Assembly (NCBI GenBank): GCA_002269645.1
Contig: NIVC01001046.1
Span: forward strand, 124,001-188,000
Source: Macrostomum lignano
Taxonomy: Eukaryota
Direction: 5' to 3'
Length of the DNA: 64,000 nucleotides
Part shown: one piece after another, positions 32,864 through 43,464 of the stretch
Position numbering within the stretch: the first letter of the stretch is position 1
How the letters are laid out: each line of letters starts with the position of its first letter
Notes under the pieces: model-generated
The model's database searches: none
What the model saw: only the letters and a program-made list of their open reading frames with translations
What the model was told of the DNA's origin: nothing
Translations under genes and position numbers: made by a program

Positions 32864-34454
32864 CTGAACTACTCAAGAGAACACAAAGTCTATAAATAAC
32901 TAGCTAATGCTGGAGCCAAACCGTAAGGCGTTGGGTTGTTACGTGAGCGTGGCAACATTTGGTTTATCTTTGTAATTCTCCAAGTTAAAATTGTGAAGTT
33001 ATACATTTACAACGGAAATAACAAATTTTTCGTCAGAATTCAAGATACATTCATATAATGCAACAAGAGAAAATACTGCTTTTTACTTAATATAAATTTC
33101 TTATTTAGAATTTCCTAGTATTTTTATCGCAAAACACTTTGTAATTGTAACAAACCTACAGTGCAATAAGTCGTACAAACCAATGCAACATTGTCCGAGC
33201 CCGAGAGCTTGCTTATCAAGGACAACTGAAGTTACGTTACGCACTACTTAAGTTGTCCTTGTTGCTTATACGAGCTATTCATCTTAAGAACAACTTGAAA
33301 TTGTTCATAGTGGTCATTGATTCGTCTACGAAGTGAAAATATCAGGTAATACATATTCAAAATGCCTATATAATTCACAACAAAATTTAATATTACATGT
33401 ACGCTCGTATAAATTTAGAACCCAGGTGTACGTATTCTTTAAATCAAAACATGCATGGACAACTGAATTAGTATAGTAGCTATTAGACTTATAATTCAGC
33501 TGGTCCATGGATGAAACTACATGTGTACAAATGTATACACATAAGAACTGTAAACATGTACTGTAAATTCACGAGGTCTTTCGCGGGTACGAGATAATCT
33601 TCGCGGGCAGCATATGCAGCAGTTGAAGCCAGGTTCCGGATGAGCAATTAAGATTATACATGTACATGTAAAGCTATAAATTTTACTATAAAACCAACAT
33701 ATACTGATGTACATGTTAAGTATAGCTAGTAGTATACCTGATACCTTAAAGCACGAAAACTACTATGTATTTTCTGTTAATAGATTCTATATACTAATTA
33801 GTTAAGACCAAACTCCTTGCTTAAAAAATCAATTTAATAAGTAGTAAATTTATCAATAAGGTTTTATCTATCTTTCATAAGAGCCCGAGTTGTCAAGTTT
33901 AAAAGATCGGCACGTACGTTTCCGCTCTGACTTGCACTGACACGTGAGAGACAGGGCTGACCAACTTAAAAATATTACATTAACAAAAAGTGCAACTGCC
34001 TACAAAATACAGCTGTTTGACCTGGGCTGGGTGACTGGGATTGGTGCTGTTAATAGAGATTGATTCGCGTGTAAGACAATCACCTTATAGCTTTGTTTGC
34101 ACTGCCCACAACTATTAACCCTTGGATCGAGCTGGGGTTGCTCCATCAACACAATGCGTATTCGTTAGGGGTGCTTAATTGTATTAGATTATCTGCCGGG
34201 AGGAGTGCGATTCTCAAGTAGGGGTGAAGTGATCCTCAGTTTGGAGCAGTGCTAATTTGACATTTATTTGACTGCCACACAATGGAATGTAAGCTGGATC
34301 TGTAACTGGATCATTAATTTTTTGCCTAATTCTCATTGATTTCTACTTCAGAATATAAGAAAAAGTGTCTGGAGAGTTATATATGTTGAAAATGCCAGTG
34401 CTTTGGTTTTGATCAACCGACTATCGGAAACATATTTCCGATATACTATCGGAA

Positions 34455-34865
34455 ACACCAGCCGAGATCAGAAACACCGAGAAGTCAGAAACACCGGGAG
34501 GTCAGAAACGCAGGAGATCAGAAACACCGGGAGGTCAGAAACGCAGGAGATCAGAAACGCAGGAGATAAGAAACGCAGGAGATCAGAAACACCGGAGATA
34601 AGAAACGCAGGAGATCAGAAACACCGGAGATAAGAAACGCAGGAGATCAGAAACACCGGAGATAAGAAACGCAGGAGATCAGAAACACCGGAGATAAGAA
34701 ACGCAGGAGATCAGAACCACCGAGAAGTCAGAAACACCGGGAGGTCAGAAACGCAGGAGATCAGAAACACCGGAGATAAGAAACGCAGGTGATCAGAAAC
34801 ACCGGAGATAAGAAACGCTGGTGATCAGAAACACCGGAGATAAGAAACACCGGGAGATCAGAAAC
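34455..34865. repeat. 16-bp degenerate minisatellite (GAGATCAGAAACACCG / GAGATAAGAAACGCAG)
   Basis: Seen directly. Confidence 0.9.
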
Positions 34866-35303
34866 ATTGAAGATCGTTTTCAGTATTGCCTGTGTATATA
34901 TTTTATCTTCGGAAACTTGTTCACCAACCGCGGACTAAGCATTTCGACAAATTGCCGCTTCCATTTAAGTTTGCCAAATTCTTTGAATGCAACGTCTTTC
35001 TACGTTGATAGTTTCACATGCCAATCTCAAAACTCCAAACAAAAGATCAATTATTACATTAAAAGCATGATGTTGTTGATTCGATTTTCCATTAGTCTCT
35101 CATCTATAGCTACATGTACATGTAGCTTCAATGCTACAAAAGAATGTTGAGTCCGGAACGGTCATGCAGAGGTCGGCATGCCTTCATTTTGAATAAATAG
35201 GAGCTCCTTGTTAAGCTTAAGCGTGTATTTGTGCTGCGTATTCGGGCAGTTGGGCAGTCAGATCAGAGTCAAAGCCGGGGTTCTCCGAGCTCAGCTGCTC
35301 AGC

Positions 35304-35546
35304 TCAGAGCACCGCCTTGGCGACCTTGCCGGCGATGCGGATGGCCTTCCTCCAGCGGAAGCGCCTCCTCCTGCGCCACTTCTCGGCCGGCTGCAGGGCG
35401 CCGTCCTCGGACATGTCGGACTCCTCCAGGTTGGCCAGGGCCTCCAGCGCGTTCATCGCATCGGCGTCCTCGGCCTGCTCCGCGCTGGGAGCGGCGGCGG
35501 CCAGGGCCGTGCAGAGCAGAAGTCCGAGAGCGAGTTGCCACTTCAT
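35304..35546 (-). CDS. Secreted prepropeptide, candidate cationic antimicrobial peptide (copy 1)
   Basis: MKWQLALGLLLCTALAAA signal, D/E-rich propiece, C-terminal WRRRRRFRWRKAIRIAGKVAKAVL*. Intronless with GC-rich codons. Confidence 0.8.
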   Translation of the reverse strand: MKWQLALGLLLCTALAAAAPSAEQAEDADAMNALEALANLEESDMSEDGALQPAEKWRRRRRFRWRKAIRIAGKVAKAVL

Positions 35547-36309
35547 GGTTGAGTCTGTTGCTGTGCGAGCTGATGAAGCTGAGAGTCTGTGACTACTATT
35601 CCTGTTAATTGATCTCAGCCAGCTGCTTTAGGCGACGCATTTATGCAGCCGAAATCGGCACGTTTTTCCGCTCCGACTGCCTTCTGTTTGGACTGCCGGG
35701 CTGGCACGTGCGTGACAAGGGCTGACCTCTCCCAGTGATCGCACACTCTCTTTTCAATCATTTGATACAAAGTTTATGGTGGCAAATAGAACCGAATTCC
35801 TGTATAATTAATAAGGTTGTTGAACAAGCAACTTAATTCGGTAAATTTACACTAGAATTTTTTCGTTTAGTGTTACGTTTGTTTGAGCGGCTGTTGCACT
35901 CTGGGGGTCTTGCTACTGCAAACACGACCCTATTTGAATAGTCATCGAATTCACATTCTATTGAAATGCGCAATTTAATAGCTCTTGTATCTTATGAGCA
36001 GCAGGAACTCGCGATGAAGAGAGCTGAGCTTCACGATGGAGAATCCATGATGAACACATTGAAATGATCGATAAAGCATAGGCGTAACAACATCCGAGAC
36101 TCTGGGGTTCCGTTTCAATTATTGCTAATGATTGAATTCAGCATTTCTGATGTGAAATCCTTATACTTTTGTTTAATAAAAGATATGTATAGAGAAGCCG
36201 TGTCGGAATTTCAAGGTTATCCACAATATGTCTCTCTGGTGTTCCCATATTAAATATGACTGATAACTGAGAATCATTACCCCCAACAGATAATCATGTA
36301 TTGCTCTTC

Positions 36310-37010
36310 AACTGAGAATCACTGCTCACAACTGAGAATCACTGCTCACAACAGAGAATCACTGCTCACAACTGAGAATCACTGCTCACAACTGAGAATC
36401 ACTGCTCACAACAGAGAATCACTGCTCACAACTGAGAATCACTGCTCACAACTGAGAATCACTGCTCACAACTGAGAATCACTGCTCACAACTGAGAATC
36501 ACTGCTCACAACTGAGAATCACTGCTCACAACAGAGAATCACTGCTCACAACTGAGAATCACTGCTCACAACTGAGAATCACTGCTCACAACAGAGAATC
36601 ACTGCTCACACCTAAGAATCACTGCTCACAACTGAGAATCACTGCTCACAACTGAGAATCACTGCTCAAAACTGAGAATCACTGCTCACAACTGAGAATC
36701 ACTGCTCACAACTGAGAATCACTGCTCACAACTGAGCATCACTGCTCACAACTGAGAATCACTGCTCACAACTGAGAATCACTGCTCACAACTGAGAATC
36801 ACTGCTCACAACTGAGAATCACTGCTCACAACTGAGAATCACTGCTCACAACTGAGAATCACTGCTCACAACTGAGAATCACTGCTCACAACTGAGAATC
36901 ACTGCTCAAAACTGAGAATCACTGCTCACAACTGAGAATCACTGCTCACAACTGAGAATCACTGCTCACAACTGAGAATCACTGCTTACAACTGGGAATC
37001 ACTGCTCTTC
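36310..37010. repeat. 20-bp minisatellite (ACTGAGAATCACTGCTCACA)n, left block
   Basis: Seen directly. The same unit in the same orientation resumes at 39134. Confidence 0.97.
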
Positions 37011-37060
37011 ACAGCTTTGGTACTCGTTAATAAGTATTAAGCATTTACCCTACATGGGTC

Positions 37061-39070
37061 TTAACCCCCCAAACACTGATGGCACATGCCAGGCGTGCCA
37101 TGGGTCTCATTTAACCATATACTGAGAATACATGTCTATGGCCTAGATGGTTTAGCATAAATATGACTTTTCAACATTCCCATAAGTCACGGATGGCATG
37201 CTGTGCGTGCCATGTTATTTTTTCGCAATTTTTCAACTATATTTGACTGCAAGTACGGGATAGATAAAAAACTTTTAAAACTTTAAAAAAAGGACAACAA
37301 CAGAACAAAGAACAGTTAGGTAAACAATATTTAATGCATCGATGAGGCATTTAGGAGGAGCGTTTTGAATTTCGTATTCTGAACGTAATTAAGTTTTACA
37401 CCGTACCACCAGTGCAACTACTGTGCTGCTGCAGTGTGCCAATTCTGAAAGCACACGACAACACACAGCCCGGGCTCTCCTGGGCTTGTAAGTGCAATAA
37501 AAGTGCCATATGAATCGATATGAAAACTGGCTTAAATACTAAGTTGCAAAAATTGACACCATTGCTGTAGCAGACTCTGCATCGCTTTGTCGGCCTTGCA
37601 TTGGCATCTGTCGGCGGCAGCTTCGATGGCACGTGCTGTGAGACGGCCCTGCGCTTCGATGTATTCAGACGTTTGCCCCGGCCTGTTTGCTCCATGAGAG
37701 TGCTTTTGATATCGCTTCATTCTTGGCAGTTGCAGACCCAGGCACTGCGGACCAACTGCAGCAAAACGTGGAACCCGAGCTTCTGGTGCCATCTGTAGGT
37801 TCTTCTCCCCGCACTGTAAGGCTGCAGTGCTGCATCAAAGCGATCAACGCCTCCCATGTTCTTATTGTACTGCAGCACCGAATTCGGCTTTAAAACTGAC
37901 TCCTCCGCTCCGCCTCGGATCACTCGCCTCACTTCCGTGCTTTCAGCAACACCGTGCGTGACTGACGGGTTGCAGGGGCAGCATTTTCAGCTCATTCGGC
38001 ACACCTCGATTGGGCCTCACCGTCCCAGTCAGTAAAGTACTGCGTTCCAGCAGAAACTGCGCCAGACGGAGCGATGTGATGTGAACCAGCTCTAACAGAA
38101 GACCTTGTGCCCCAGGTCCAGCAAATTTTTACTCAATTCAACGACGATCTTCTCGCTCAACGACAAATTCCCGCAGTTTAATCCATCTCAAAACTTGTCG
38201 TCATCCTGCTTAGCAGCATGTACATGAAAGTTCCACAGAAAACCTGTCAAAGCTTCTGTCCAGCAGTACACCTTGAGGCCGAATCTGGCACGCTTGTTGG
38301 GCATGAACTGCCGGAAAATGAGCCTGCCCTTGTACATGACCAGTTCTTCATCGACAGACACCTCTTGACTTGGGCTGTAATTTGCTTGGCAAATATCGCG
38401 GGAAATGTTAAGAAACGGTCGCATCTTTTTCAAGGAGTCCTGGTGGTTGACGGTAGTGCAGTCGTAAAATCGAAGGAATGATAAAATCTGCACAAACCGA
38501 TCCCTTCCAAGGCAATGTTCTTTCTGGAAGTATTCACCGCCGTAGAAGTCTCCCGTGGACCAGTACATGTGCATTTCGGGCTTCTTCACAAGACCCATGT
38601 ACAGGACGATTGCTAGAGACTTCTTCACCTCATTGTCGGTACACGCTCTCCAAGTTGATAGCAAATTGGGAAGAGCTCCGTCCTGATCTTCAGCTGTCAA
38701 ATGTTGAAGCTTCATGTCAGCTCGGGAGTTGGTCCAGATGCGAATGGCAGACACCATGCAGATTAGCGGTGAGAAAGTGCTGCAGATAGAATTGCACCTG
38801 GGCCATTTTACCTTCAGGAGCTTGTGCTTGAATGTCTGGGTTCAGGGCCAGGCACAGCGAGGAATTCTCGTGGTTAAGCACAGCGAAACGTACAATTCCA
38901 CAATCCACTGGTTAAGCAGCTGTGTCAGCGGGAAAATAGTCGCACTGAAGAGGATCTCCAAGGCAACTGCTGCAAAATGCGGAGGATGGCATCGGAAAAT
39001 GATGCGCTACCTCCACCGGTGCATTACTGGCAACATATTCTCTAAGCTTGGAAAATTTTGGAACTGACTA
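37061..39070 (-). mobile_element. piggyBac-like transposon (PGBD-type transposase), decayed, one end missing
   Basis: VSVDEELVMYKGRLIFRQFMPNKRARFGLK, YNKNMGGVDRFD and a Cys-rich C-terminus RCRVC. TTAACCC terminus at 37061 with subterminal GATGGCA...GCGTGCCA repeats. No GGGTTAA found at the other end. Confidence 0.9.
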
Positions 39071-39133
39071 TTCAGCACGGTGGCTCCTTTGTTGCGTTGC
39101 GTTGCCTTGTTAGATGCTAGAAGATGCACGATG

Positions 39134-39285
39134 ACTGCTCACAACTGAAAATCACTGCTCACAACTAAGCATTGCTGCTCACACCTGAGAATCACTGCTC
39201 ACAGCTAAGCATCACTGCTCACACCTGAGAATCACTGCTCACAACTGAGCATCACAGCTTACACGTGAGAATCACTCCTCCCAGC
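39134..39285. repeat. 20-bp minisatellite, degenerate right block
   Basis: Same unit as 36310-37010. Confidence 0.85.
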
Positions 39286-39702
39286 AGATAATCTAGGAGT
39301 ACTACATGCAATTAAGCAGCACTAACGACTAGGCGTTCTGTTGATTATGGAGGTCAACACAGCTACAAGGGTTCATGCTTGAATGCAGTGCAAACAAAGG
39401 CTATTAAGGTGATTGTCTTACACGCCAACTCATCCTAACTGAGAGCAGCAATCCCAGTGACCCAGCCCAAGTCAAACAGTGTTTCGGAGGCAGTTGCAAT
39501 TTTTGTTGCTGTGATATTTTTAAGTAGGTGAGTCTGGCGCTCACGTGCCAGCCCGACAGTCCAAACAGAAGGCAGTCGGAGCGGAAAAACGTGCCGATTT
39601 CGGCTGCATAAATGCGTCGCCTAAAGCAGCTGGCTGAGATCAATTAACAGGAATAGTCACAGACTCTCAGCTTCATCAGTTCGCACAGCAACCGACTCAA
39701 TC

Positions 39703-39945
39703 ATGAAGTGGCAACTCGCTCTCGGACTTCTGCTCTGCACGGCCCTGGCTGCCGCCGCTCCCAGCGCGGAGCAGGCCGAGGACGCCGATGCGATGAACGC
39801 GCTGGAGGCCCTGGCCAACCTGGAGGAGTCCGACATGTCCGAGGACGGCGCCCTGCAGCCGGCCGAGAAGTGGCGCAGGAGGAGGCGCTTCCGCTGGAGG
39901 AAGGCCATCCGCGTGGCCGGCAAGGTCGCCAAGGCGGTGCTCTGA
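39703..39945 (+). CDS. Secreted prepropeptide, candidate cationic antimicrobial peptide (copy 2)
   Basis: Identical to copy 1 at protein level except I->V (AIRVAG). Confidence 0.8.
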   Translation: MKWQLALGLLLCTALAAAAPSAEQAEDADAMNALEALANLEESDMSEDGALQPAEKWRRRRRFRWRKAIRVAGKVAKAVL

Positions 39946-41020
39946 GCAGCTGAGCTCGGAGAACCCCGGCTTTGACTCTGATCTGACTGCCCAACTGCCC
40001 GAATACGCAGCACAAATACACGCTTAAGCTTAACAAGGAGCTCCTATTTATTCAAAATGAAGGCATGCCGACCTCTGCATGACCGCTCCGGACTCAACAT
40101 TATTTTGTAGCATTGAGGCTAGCTGGGAATGCAAAAGAGAAGCATCATGTTTAGGCTTGATTAGGTATGAATTTTTTTGGTGATGATTCACAAAGACTAA
40201 AAATAAAGTTTTTACTGGTGGTTTATCAGTGTACTATAAAGTTAGACAATTAAATCACAAAAGTTGTGCTCGCAGCTTACTACTGCACACAGCTCTGTTA
40301 GTAGACAGTTGGCAAAAGCTTGTGCACAATAATGGGAGAGGTGATATTAACAAATGAGTGTCGCACATTTCTAATTATTAATGATATAGGCACACCTAAT
40401 TGGCATTAAGGAAGCATGACGCATAAATTTATTAATAAATTCTAAAACCTAGCATTCAAGTAAATTTCTATCGTTCTTGCGACTGAAGCTTAAAATACAC
40501 GCAGGACACAACTGCAACACTTTATTAGATAGCAACAGACAAATTTTCGGTTACATTGTCCTGGAATAACACTGGCTGGAAACTGGAATAATATAAAAGT
40601 ACACACAATCAATCAGCTTAAACGTGCATCATTTAAACTAGCAGTAAGTGTTATTAAATGCTTCTATCCGATTTAAAATATGATTGAGCTCTTTCCCGAT
40701 GAAATCGGTACCTAGGCTAAGAAGCGTCCCAGTCACTTGCATCGTCCCAAGAGTTTTTGTCTGCGACTTTGAAACGATGCTGGGGCGACAGAGTCGCACT
40801 TTATAACAGCTACATTTAGTCTATTTGAGTTAGTGAAAAAGTTAAACGCTAACACTTTTAGACGACTTTTTGGCGACTTTTATTACGATGCTAAAACTCT
40901 ATAGTCGCTATAGTCACTAGCGACTTGTTTGCAATGACTCTTTAGCGATTCTCTATCAAAATTAACTACTACCTAGATACAAAAGTACACGATAAACTTT
41001 AATTTAACGGACATTCAGGA

Positions 41021-42626
41021 CTATCCGAGAGGTGCCTGAACAGCCCGCACAATGGACCGCTCGCAGCAGGGACAATGCGGCGGCGGGCCAGACTGTCTCC
41101 TAATAAAATTCGAGCAGATCTCGCACAGGCGGATAGCGTGAGTCTCCACTCGAGCAGCCGCCAATGCGCAGACCGTATCGTACTTGGCGGTACACACGGG
41201 CTGATTGATCCGGCAGAACTGGCACAGATCTAGCAGGCTGAATGCGGGCTCGCGGAAGCGGAGAAACAGGCAGCTGAACTGCGTTGATGCCCAGCTGATT
41301 GCGCGGACCATTCGGCGGAAGGCGTCGTCCGGGTTGGTCTCGCTTGGCACGATGCCAAACCGGCTAGCGAGAGGGCGCGGGGAGGGGCCAGGGAGTTTCT
41401 TAGAAAAAGTCACTCATGTTTGAGACAGCAGACTTTGGTATGAACCTAGTCTTTGAGAGAGAGTCATCTGCTGGGGTTCGTCTTTAGGGACGAAGTCATG
41501 GATGAGGTCATAGATGAGGTCACGGATAAGATCATAGATGATGCCACGGATAAGATCATAGATGAGGTCACGGATAAGATCATAGATGATGCCACGGATA
41601 AGATCATAGATGATGCCACGGATAAGATCATAGATGATGCCATGGATAAGATCATAGGTGAGGTCACGGATAAGATCATAGATGATGCCACGGATAAGAT
41701 CATAGATGATACCATGGATAAGATCATAGATGATGCCACGGATAAGATCATAGATGATGCCATGGATAAGATCATAGGTGAGGTCACGGATAAGATCATA
41801 GATGAGGTCACGGATAAGATCATAGATGATACCATGGATAAGATCATAGATGATGCCACGGATAAGATCATAGATGATGCCATGGATAAGATCATAGGTG
41901 AGGTCACGGATAAGATCATAGATGATGCCACGGATAAGATCATAGATGATGCCACGGATAAGATCATAGATGAGGTCACGGATAAGATCATAGATGATGT
42001 CACGGATAAGATCATAGATGAGGTCACGGATAAGATCATAGATGAGGTCACGGATAAGATCATAGATAATGTCATCACAGCCTAAGAAAGCAGTGTCGCC
42101 GCTCTCACCGGTACAGGAACAGCACATCGTCCACAGTGATGTTCTGCCTGCAGCGATGGTCGGAGTGTCGGCTGAAGTGCTCATTCAATCTGGCAGCGAA
42201 TCGCTGGGGCGTGTCGGCTAGCCAGTGCTCGGGGCCGCCAGTCAATCTCATCAGCCGATGCCAGCGCTCTAGCAGGCCAATCAAATCGTGACAGGTCAGG
42301 TCGCCGCCTCTGGCAGATTTGAAAAACTCGAACAGCAGATGAGAGTTGGGATTACTAGCGTTGCCAGGCGGTAACCAGGCTCGCCAGCCGTCTGGCCCGC
42401 GGCAAGTGGGATCGGGGAACAGCTGTCTAGTCGATTGACTGGCGCGCAAGTGGACGTAAAACTCGGCGCTAGTTGCGTCCGGCCGGCCGGACAAAAAGCT
42501 GGCCAGCTCGTCTACTAAGGTGACGCTGTCGGACACGGCGCGGGGTGAGGGCGGAACGGCTAGGGGACTAACAGGATTGCTGACGGATGAAGCTCTGCTG
42601 CTATCGCGCCCCGCCGCATATTGCAT
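41021..42626 (-). CDS. Orphan two-exon gene, ~286 aa, with a C-terminal RING-like Cys/His motif
   Basis: Exons 42626-42109 (donor CG|GTGAGA) and 41363-41021 (acceptor after a pyrimidine tract, CGCTAG|C), both phase 2. C-terminus CQFC...H..RLCEIC...CPCCERSI. Confidence 0.65.
41495..42075. repeat. 24-bp intronic minisatellite (GATGAGGTCACGGATAAGATCATA)n
   Basis: Seen directly. Confidence 0.95.
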
Positions 42627-42764
42627 AGACTAAAATCTATGGCGATGGGGTGGCGATGGGGCGCTGCTTATAATTAATGGCGCCTCCACCGTCAGCAACA
42701 TGCAATGAAACAGTGGCTAAGCATTTTAGGGGCTGCGGTCTGCGGCAGAAGCGGGATATCTAGA

Positions 42765-43205
42765 GGACTGGGAATAGGATACTAGAGGGTTGTGAGTGGG
42801 ATATCTAGATGGCTGAGAGTGGGATATCTAGAGGGTTGTGAGTGGGACATCTAGATGGCTGAGAGGGATATCTAGAGGGTTGGGAGTGGGATATCTAGAT
42901 GGCTGAGAGTGGGATATCTAGAGGGTTGTGAGTGGGATATCTAGATGGCTGAGAGTGGGATATCCAGGGGGCTGGGAGTGGGACATCTAAAGGGCTGGGA
43001 GTGGGACATCTAAAGGGCTGGGAGTGGGACATCTAGAAGGCTGGGATTGGGATATCTAGAGGGTTGGGAGTGGGATATCTAGAGGGTTGGGAGTGGGATA
43101 TCTAGAGGGTTGGGAGTGGGATATCTAGAGGGTTGGGAGTGGGATATCTAGAGGGTTGGGAGTGGGATATCTAGAGGGTTGGGAGTGGGATATCTAGAGG
43201 GCCGG
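42765..43205. repeat. 23-bp G-rich minisatellite (GGGATATCTAGAGGGTTGGGAGT)n
   Basis: Seen directly between COX19 and the RING-like gene. Confidence 0.93.
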
Positions 43206-43464
43206 GTTGTGACTTGAGCTTAAGAGGTGAAATAAAACTTGCATGAGCAGTTCGGAATCCCACAGCCACATCAATGGTGCGTACGGATAATGAAGTATGA
43301 GTTTGCAAATTCTCAAATGTAAAACTTTCGCGTCAATTTATTGCAGTGACTGCAAGGGCAAAGTACATTTGAAAACTAAGTTACTACACGAATCGATAAT
43401 AATTGCCAATGAATAGCAATTATGACATTACAAACGAGTTTAAAAATCCGAAATGCATCAAATA

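Follow-up and report, generated by a model that had tools for sequence, protein, structure and literature searches.

A head-to-head pair of prepropeptide genes in Macrostomum lignano and its lineage-specific multigene family of candidate secreted cationic peptides

The window analysed here is a stretch of 64,000 nucleotides from the flatworm Macrostomum lignano (assembly GCA_002269645.1, contig NIVC01001046.1, positions 124,001 to 188,000), and it contains two nearly identical small genes whose predicted products have the layout of secreted prepropeptides. Their coding sequences (CDSs), stop codons included, occupy positions 35304-35546 on the minus strand (copy 1) and 39703-39945 on the plus strand (copy 2). 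Each one starts with ATG and is an uninterrupted open reading frame (ORF) of 80 aa, and the sole amino-acid difference between the two is at residue 70, which is Ile in copy 1 (ATC) and Val in copy 2 (GTG). A preliminary description of this DNA, made from the sequence alone, had reported two intronless ORFs with one Ile/Val exchange, and the ORF list of the window shows both. The exact protein of copy 1 is found on contig NIVC01001046.1 of the assembly, and that of copy 2 is also encoded on contigs NIVC01001363.1 and NIVC01001888.1. Within the 64-kb window, the two ORFs are the only copies of the gene family described below.

The two genes are arranged head-to-head and point away from each other, one in each arm of an inverted duplication of about 595 bp. 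Arm 1 (35123-35717, minus strand) is a complete small gene unit, in which 171 nt precede the ATG of the CDS and about 180 nt follow its stop codon, and arm 2 (39535-40121, plus strand) is the second gene unit. Base-by-base comparison of this inverted repeat showed that the arms are 97-98% identical, with a difference of about 2% in the flanks of the CDS, and that the two CDSs are distinguished by three substitutions (one synonymous, the others in the codon ATC/GTG) and, at the stop codon, by an indel of 5 bp (CTGAG). Because the copies are nearly identical, the pair represents a recent duplication without a selection signal of its own. The spacer between the arms, about 3.8 kb long, contains a 20-bp satellite (36309-37007, 35 copies, with a shorter patch of the same unit at 39134-39280) and the decayed remnants of a piggyBac-type transposase (37717-38757, minus strand), with at least two ORF fragments that match Pfam DDE_Tnp_1_7 with E values of 1e-32 and 1e-4. 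The head-to-head pair and the transposase remnant are present also on NIVC01001363.1, and the presence of the pair on NIVC01001888.1 can be inferred from the upstream motif at the edge of that locus. None of the five copies read across the three contigs has an interrupted ORF, the same motif pointing to a sixth copy, and the repeated occurrence of the pair on further contigs fits the redundancy reported for the M. lignano assembly (PMC5730564). Since the transposase remnant sits between the gene copies on all three contigs, this arrangement predates their divergence.

The precursor consists of three parts. Residues 1-19 (MKWQLALGLLLCTALAAAA), encoded at 35490-35546 (minus strand) in copy 1 and 39703-39759 (plus strand) in copy 2, form the signal peptide, which is the most conserved part of the family and which, by the -3/-1 rule, is probably cleaved after Ala18 (A-x-A) or Ala16. 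The acidic propiece follows at residues 20-56 (35379-35489, minus strand, and 39760-39870, plus strand); it has 11 Asp/Glu, one Lys and no cysteine, and ends with Glu-Lys. The last part is the cationic C-terminal peptide WRRRRRFRWRKAIRIAGKVAKAVL, residues 57-80 (35307-35378, minus strand, and 39871-39942, plus strand), which for the two copies together reads WRRRRRFRWRKAIR[IV]AGKVAKAVL. Direct counting of these 24 residues gave eight Arg, three Lys and no acidic residue, so that the composition given in the preliminary description for the propiece and for the 24-mer was accurate, and the resulting net charges are -10 for the propiece and +11 for the peptide.

An alternative product of the window gene is the 18-mer FRWRKAIRIAGKVAKAVL, released past the Arg run. 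Because Glu-Lys-Trp is a poor convertase site and KWRRRRR|F is a good one, release of the 18-mer would be at least as likely as that of the 24-mer. Hydrophobic moments were computed at 100 degrees and compared with those of shuffled sequences; the value is 0.68 for the C-terminal 14-mer KAIRIAGKVAKAVL (p = 0.011) and 0.55, a borderline result, for the 18-mer (p = 0.08). As proposed earlier from a helical wheel, basic residues (5, 8, 12 and 15) and hydrophobic residues (3, 7, 10, 14 and 17) do fall at positions on opposite faces of the helix. The most apt description of the window peptide is that of a head rich in Arg and Trp that precedes a short helix of amphipathic character. The AlphaFold2 model, obtained with a 17-sequence alignment, has helices at residues 3-17, 27-41 and 53-79 that match the signal, the propiece and the peptide, respectively; its mean pLDDT of 60.8 corresponds to low confidence, and the value for helix 53-79 is about 69.

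The preliminary description had regarded the gene as an orphan without a recognizable homolog, a view that did not survive the database searches. Sequence comparison places the window gene as one subgroup of a large, previously undescribed M. lignano multigene family with at least 25 related genes, which is named the Macrostomum MKWQ prepropeptide family in this analysis. A word-indexed search matched the window gene alone. An exhaustive HMMER search of 1.84 billion representatives, at the level of 50% identity, retrieved six further related representatives and one fusion model besides the cluster of the window gene itself, with seven family members at this level, and its remaining matches were spurious repeat hits. 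Two profile searches, with clusters defined at 90% identity, gave 22-25 (about 25) family clusters. All these clusters are M. lignano "hypothetical proteins" except one, which derives from a 929-bp contig of run SRR31628392.

The profile and HMMER searches found no protein outside Macrostomum, and the family alignment retrieved no relative from the JGI metagenomes. When the window protein and 17 members were scanned against Pfam, only sub-threshold noise came back, and PDB sequence searches with the family profile and two mature peptides gave no match. A match to PF22991 ("Lock_Gag1-like") over a 17-residue acidic stretch of subgroup C was judged spurious, as the cut-off was reached only in an internally duplicated model. 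The literature searched by gene identifier does not name the window genes, and the searched papers that touch on both M. lignano and antimicrobial peptides give no account of a family of this kind.

The six loci that were fetched have uninterrupted CDSs of 62-95 codons, and the reading frame is kept across the paralogue clusters. Family genes are themselves clustered in the genome. At least seven copies or fragments lie on both strands within 27 kb of NIVC01001664.1 (positions 9905-37330 of locus L005), and five copies lie within 20 kb of NIVC01000619.1. Among the members of the L005 cluster, one carries an in-frame stop (about 17007), one is frameshifted (about 26355) and two are 5' fragments (33432 and 35075), and a GenBank model of 139 aa spans 27 kb of this locus, fusing two copies. 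Two UniProt names given to family members are misleading. The "Sushi domain-containing" protein A0A1I8JEL3 (P0012) is a gene-model fusion of which the last 69 residues or so are a family precursor, and the "SERPIN domain-containing" protein A0A1I8G6Q8 (P0024) is a family precursor of 73 residues whose C-terminus is aberrant and which is too short to hold a serpin domain. The 929-bp Logan contig of SRR31628392 (L004) carries a member at positions 541-813 with a Pro/Arg-rich peptide containing PRVR(L/M) repeats, and this contig may show that the family extends beyond the reference strain or species.

The precursors of the family start with M[KR][WY]Q[LIF][AV]LGLLLC..LA...P, which corresponds to the near-invariant signal peptide MKWQLALGLLLC..., and the window protein (MKWQLALGLLLCTALAAAAP) conforms to this pattern. 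Alignment A3 shows no variation at Ala18 and Pro20, and conservation of at least 90% at M1, Q4 and L7-L11. The propiece has the core A.A...LE.L, found in the window protein as well, and in the same alignment E26, L34, E35, L37 and K56 are invariant. It ends with Lys-Lys across the family and with Glu-Lys in the window subgroup, which is thus atypical at the cleavage site, its P2 residue being Glu where all the other members have Lys. The window subgroup is atypical also at the other end of the peptide, because 23 of the 26 distinct precursors terminate with Gly or Gly-Lys/Arg, an amidation signal; the exceptions are the member on the SRR31628392 contig and the two window variants, which end in ...KAVL and have no C-terminal Gly.

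Past the cleavage site, the family sequences have little in common but their composition. The C-terminal peptides vary from 6 to 37 aa, are hypervariable, and are almost always cationic and hydrophobic. They include Arg/Tyr/Trp-rich peptides of 30-37 residues, FRIRIRWGRVARNVLRLL, WRIKSACKIFRRLLHLARKCYAKK, the Pro/Arg-rich FLRVRLPRVRMPRVRLPRVRLPRLRVRFRWSKK, alternating peptides of 8-10 residues such as FVRVRVRL and WLRVRARVRI, and His-rich peptides such as FIHIHF, GFHVHFH and FHLHLP. The short ones have the periodicity of a strand (180 degrees, p = 0.004-0.056). The layout that had been proposed for the window pair, namely a signal peptide, an acidic propiece and a cationic C-terminus, is real, and its support goes well beyond the pair, because it recurs in about 25 paralogue clusters as a conserved prepro cassette with a hypervariable cationic end.

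This gradient of conservation was quantified at both the protein and the nucleotide level. Mean pairwise amino-acid identity falls from 79% in the signal peptide to 50% in the propiece and 21% in the peptide, and the nucleotide identity within subgroups is 0.68-0.73 in the upstream 108 nt, 0.77-0.84 in the 5' leader, 0.93-0.96 in the signal peptide, 0.88-0.92 in the propiece, 0.58-0.63 in the peptide and 0.57-0.58 in the 3' untranslated region (3'UTR). The prepro cassette therefore stands out as conserved from its surroundings, and all sequence 3' of the cleavage site has changed at the pace of noncoding DNA. Pooled pN/pS is 0.38 in the signal peptide, 0.89 in the propiece and 0.87 in the peptide, and the codons of the signal peptide are under purifying selection. 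The peptide region diverges no more than the 3'UTR, and its pN/pS is about 0.87, so that a claim of hypervariability focused on it, or of positive selection, was rejected. The features retained by the peptide part are an open frame, the basic/hydrophobic composition and the terminal Gly.

Conservation extends upstream of the genes. The motif CGGAAAAACGTGCCGAT is found at 35654-35670 (minus strand) and 39582-39598 (plus strand), that is, only at the two family genes, with two matches in the window against 0.02 expected, and a TATA-like box, CATAAAT, lies at 35639-35645 (minus strand; 93-99 nt upstream of the ATG of copy 1) and at 39607-39613 (plus strand). In alignment A2, which covers all the subgroups, the conserved block consists of CGGAAA[A/C]ACGTGCC[G/A]AT (CGGAAAMACGTGCCRAT), a gap of 9-10 nt, and GCATAAAT; it is located about 90-125 nt 5' of the ATG, with GGAAA and ACGTG as cores, and both elements are present at the window genes. 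At loci L001-L003, L006 and L007, each family gene has the motif upstream of it. A diverged copy of the block occurs at positions 402-437 of L004, 5' of the gene on the SRR31628392 contig, and this contig is therefore genomic DNA. By its sequence, the block looks like a shared core promoter. The transcript-derived models of two paralogues (P0022 and P0027) read through it, and it is a candidate for a cis-regulatory element or, alternatively, for a 5' leader that has been conserved.

The surroundings of the pair raise the question of whether the ORFs have a function at all, since they could be chance frames in GC-rich repeats, such as long terminal inverted repeats of the piggyBac-like element between them, or recently dead pseudogenes. 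The arms do lie on either side of piggyBac remnants and satellites, none of the six reading frames is closed in the GC-rich segment, pseudogenes exist within the family, and the two copies are too similar for selection between them to show. However, the terminal-repeat version was rejected because paralogues elsewhere conserve the gene-like unit (the upstream motif, the ATG and the prepro cassette) without any such element. Furthermore, the GC content of the ORF by codon position is 0.68/0.51/0.91, compared with 0.46 for the whole window, and this third-position value, the low pN/pS of the signal peptide, the ORF intact in every copy read on the three contigs, and the RNA-seq-derived gene models at the loci all argue against chance or decay, which makes a nonfunctional origin very improbable.

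The GenBank models of the window locus deserve a separate description. PAA73003.1 (129 aa) and PAA68913.1 (127 aa) are chimeric, and each is the mirror image of the other on the opposite strand. In one of them, 35341-35432 (plus strand) is joined to 39651-39945 (plus strand), so that an exon antisense to one copy is followed, after a GT-AG "intron", by the 5' leader of the other copy and its CDS, with the donor CAG|GTTGG and the acceptor ttaacag|G placed 52 nt upstream of the ATG of the latter. Such models may be an artefact of mapping on an inverted repeat or may reflect real antisense spliced transcription. Transcript assemblies based on RNA-seq underlie the GenBank annotation (PMC5730564), and because the chimeric models come from these assemblies, the window locus is transcribed, even though its product is misstated. 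It is highly probable that both ORFs are genuine prepropeptide genes, that they are transcribed, and that they belong to a large family specific to this lineage.

Information on where the family is expressed comes from a paralogue. The primers of the in situ hybridization probe RNA815_1838.3 match positions 9977-10340 of L005 exactly, and this interval is a complete family gene with a transcript of 501 nt. Table S11 of PMC7336406 lists the expression of this probe as "gonads", a label taken there from Ramm et al. 2019, a study on socially sensitive genes. In the positional RNA-seq data (PMC4490696), the same transcript has 93 reads in the head, 94 in head plus testis, 49 in head, testis and ovary, and 176 in the whole worm, and it is assigned to class 0,0,0.

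These data bear on a possible reproductive role, in which the genes would encode secreted germline or gonad peptides that evolve fast and take part in the biology of gametes or eggs or in sexual conflict, and any membrane activity would be secondary, as in the protection of eggs. The "gonads" label, as listed in that table, and the rapid divergence, which is typical of reproductive proteins, both speak in its favour. Yet the head-only fragment yields as many reads as the fragments containing gonads, and the subgroup of the probe has only about 40% propiece identity to the window gene. Moreover, such a role is compatible with an antimicrobial mode of action. As the primary function of the family, reproduction appears unlikely.

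The charges of the two halves of the precursor bear on the function of the propiece. Among 26 distinct pairs, the net charge ranges from -2 to -11 for the propiece and from 0 to +18 for the peptide, and the sum of the two is within +/-3 in 23 of the pairs. The two charges are inversely correlated (Pearson r = -0.89, Spearman -0.85), a value uncorrected for shared ancestry, as the 26 pairs are not phylogenetically independent, with a trend that holds across subgroups. This correlation fits what a neutralizing propiece predicts, and with it the earlier suggestion that the acidic part neutralizes the peptide gains support. Neutralization of a cationic peptide by an anionic propiece has been described for the defensin propeptides, and the balance of charges is the likeness between the two systems; the flatworm family, in contrast, has neither the cysteine framework nor any homology to defensins, so that the analogy is one of principle only.

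The same precursors could also be read as sources of signalling peptides, that is, of neuropeptide- or hormone-like messengers, some of which would end in -RFamide, -RLamide or -RIamide. The succession of signal peptide, spacer, dibasic site and peptide-Gly is the classic layout of neuropeptide precursors, the Lys-Lys site accompanied by a terminal Gly or Gly-Lys/Arg is found in most paralogues (23/26), and the short products, such as FVRVHVRF-NH2 and IFRVRVRI-NH2, have the size of neuropeptides. However, neuropeptide precursors conserve the peptide more than the spacer, whereas in this family the prepro part is conserved and the peptide, hypervariable in both length and sequence, is the least conserved portion. 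The existence of some 25 divergent paralogue clusters, the net charge of up to +18 reached by the products, and the window gene itself, with Glu-Lys in place of a dibasic site and no Gly, are further difficulties, and the in situ label that the table in PMC7336406 gives for the paralogue is "gonads", not nervous system. A signalling function is, on this evidence, quite improbable.

The interpretation preferred here is that the products are secreted, cationic, membrane-active defence peptides, which, mechanism included, is judged to be somewhat more probable than all the other options taken together. From the features of the precursors we infer the positions of cleavage, the secretion and the membrane-active defence function, and the following mechanism is proposed. 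The window ORFs would be functional single-exon prepropeptide genes of a Macrostomum-specific multigene family, whose N-terminal 18-19 residues would direct the precursor into the secretory pathway. The acidic helical propiece of about 37 residues (net -10) would then neutralize and chaperone the basic peptide (net +11) during synthesis and storage, until a cut of the prohormone-convertase type releases it; in the paralogues this cut would fall after the invariant Lys56 (Lys-Lys), and in the window subgroup with Glu-Lys, more probably after the RRRRR run. The released cationic peptide, with its Arg/Trp-rich head and amphipathic helical tail, would act on anionic membranes as an antimicrobial or cytolytic effector. 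At the level of the family, one conserved secretory cassette would be combined with a rapidly diversifying payload, as occurs in frog preprodermaseptins and cathelicidins.

Several observations weigh against this interpretation. The amphipathicity claimed earlier for the cationic C-terminus holds for the 14-mer and is borderline for the 18-mer, but it is not significant for the whole 24-mer, with a hydrophobic moment of 0.39 (p = 0.26 against shuffled sequences). Some paralogue peptides, such as FIHIHF and GFHVHFH, have only 6-7 residues and are uncharged at neutral pH, and are expected to be poor antimicrobials. Because the divergence of the peptide region equals that of the 3'UTR, with a pN/pS of 0.87, relaxed constraint is inseparable from diversifying selection, and the shared ancestry of the 26 pairs tempers the charge correlation. 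No expression data for the window gene itself (Mlig026085) were found by identifier in the literature or in the supplementary tables searched. The transcript counts of the paralogue are low, independent of the body region, and present in heads. The "gonads" label and the positional RNA-seq data disagree, and neither of them indicates the epidermis, mucus, gut or another barrier tissue.

Preprodermaseptins and cathelicidins are known cases in which a conserved prepro region precedes a hypervariable peptide. The preprodermaseptins of frog skin (frog skin active peptides, FSAP; PF03032) resemble the flatworm family in having a conserved signal, an acidic propiece running up to a basic site, and a hypervariable, cationic and often amidated peptide, and the FSAP superfamily is also multigenic, with one secretory cassette coupled to very different peptides. 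The likeness is in design only, as PF03032 gave no match to the window protein at E<=1 or to 17 members at E<=0.1. Furthermore, cleavage occurs at Lys-Arg in the frog precursors and at Lys-Lys or Glu-Lys here, the tissue is the skin gland of anurans in one case and the organism a flatworm in the other, and the flatworm genes show the same degree of divergence in the 3'UTR and in the peptide region. Cathelicidins combine a conserved proregion with C-terminal peptides of helical, Pro/Arg-rich, Trp-rich or strand type, a range to which that of the flatworm family is comparable, since it includes a Pro/Arg-rich member (L004) and amidation ends of the GKR type. Their proregion, however, is a cystatin-like cathelin domain of about 100 aa with four conserved cysteines, in place of an acidic helix of about 37 aa without cysteine, and Pfam scans of the window protein and 17 members gave no match to PF00666.

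Among the invertebrates, the arminins of Hydra are taxon-restricted and multicopy, and combine a signal peptide, an anionic N-terminal part and a cationic C-terminal peptide. The flatworm family shares with them this layout, the taxon restriction and the multiple copies; the exhaustive HMMER search, run without a direct comparison with an arminin profile, retrieved no arminin or other cnidarian protein. Hydra periculin is instead an example of a peptide associated with the germline or the embryo. Closer in taxonomy are the helminth defence molecules (HDM, e.g., FhHDM-1) of trematodes, small secreted proteins with a C-terminal amphipathic helix that have been likened to peptides of the cathelicidin type. 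They have in common with this family the small size, the flatworm origin, the signal peptide and the C-terminal helix, but they lack both the charge pair of acidic propiece and basic peptide and the hypervariable payload, and no trematode protein emerged from the searches. By analogy, the family would thus resemble a dermaseptin- or cathelicidin-type system in design while standing outside every known family.

To our knowledge, the immune effectors of free-living flatworms are almost unknown. A broader hypothesis, put forward tentatively and with less than even confidence, is that these genes make up a superfamily of gene-encoded host-defence peptides, the first one from a free-living flatworm, with an origin independent of all the known families. 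In it, the cassette and the shared upstream element would drive about 25 loci, whose products would belong to four classes (helical Arg/Trp, ultrashort (Val-Arg)n-amide strand, Pro/Arg-rich and His-switch) and would constitute a co-regulated repertoire shaping the microbiome or protecting the eggs. Should the peptides be antimicrobial, the design of dermaseptins and cathelicidins, based on a conserved cassette plus a hypervariable payload, would have had an independent origin in this family, which would also provide a natural library of cationic, amidated peptides of very short length and a clean case of charge co-evolution between propiece and peptide. Should they serve reproduction or signalling, they would still be a large, fast-evolving and lineage-specific component of the secretome, mislabelled by the current annotation. 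Because both transgenesis (PMC5730564) and RNAi (PMC11075559) are available for M. lignano, the family is immediately testable.

Finally, the DNA around the locus is rich in repeats. Satellites occur at 34464-34865, 36309-37007, 39134-39280, 41500-42071 and 42753-43206, with units of 16/32, 20, 24 and 23 bp, and the 20-bp unit is found on both sides of the spacer with identical orientation. An additional inverted repeat of 130 bp (33957-34087 and 39405-39532) is 83% identical between its two parts and is not symmetric with the gene arms, and it is probably a fragment of a dispersed repeat.

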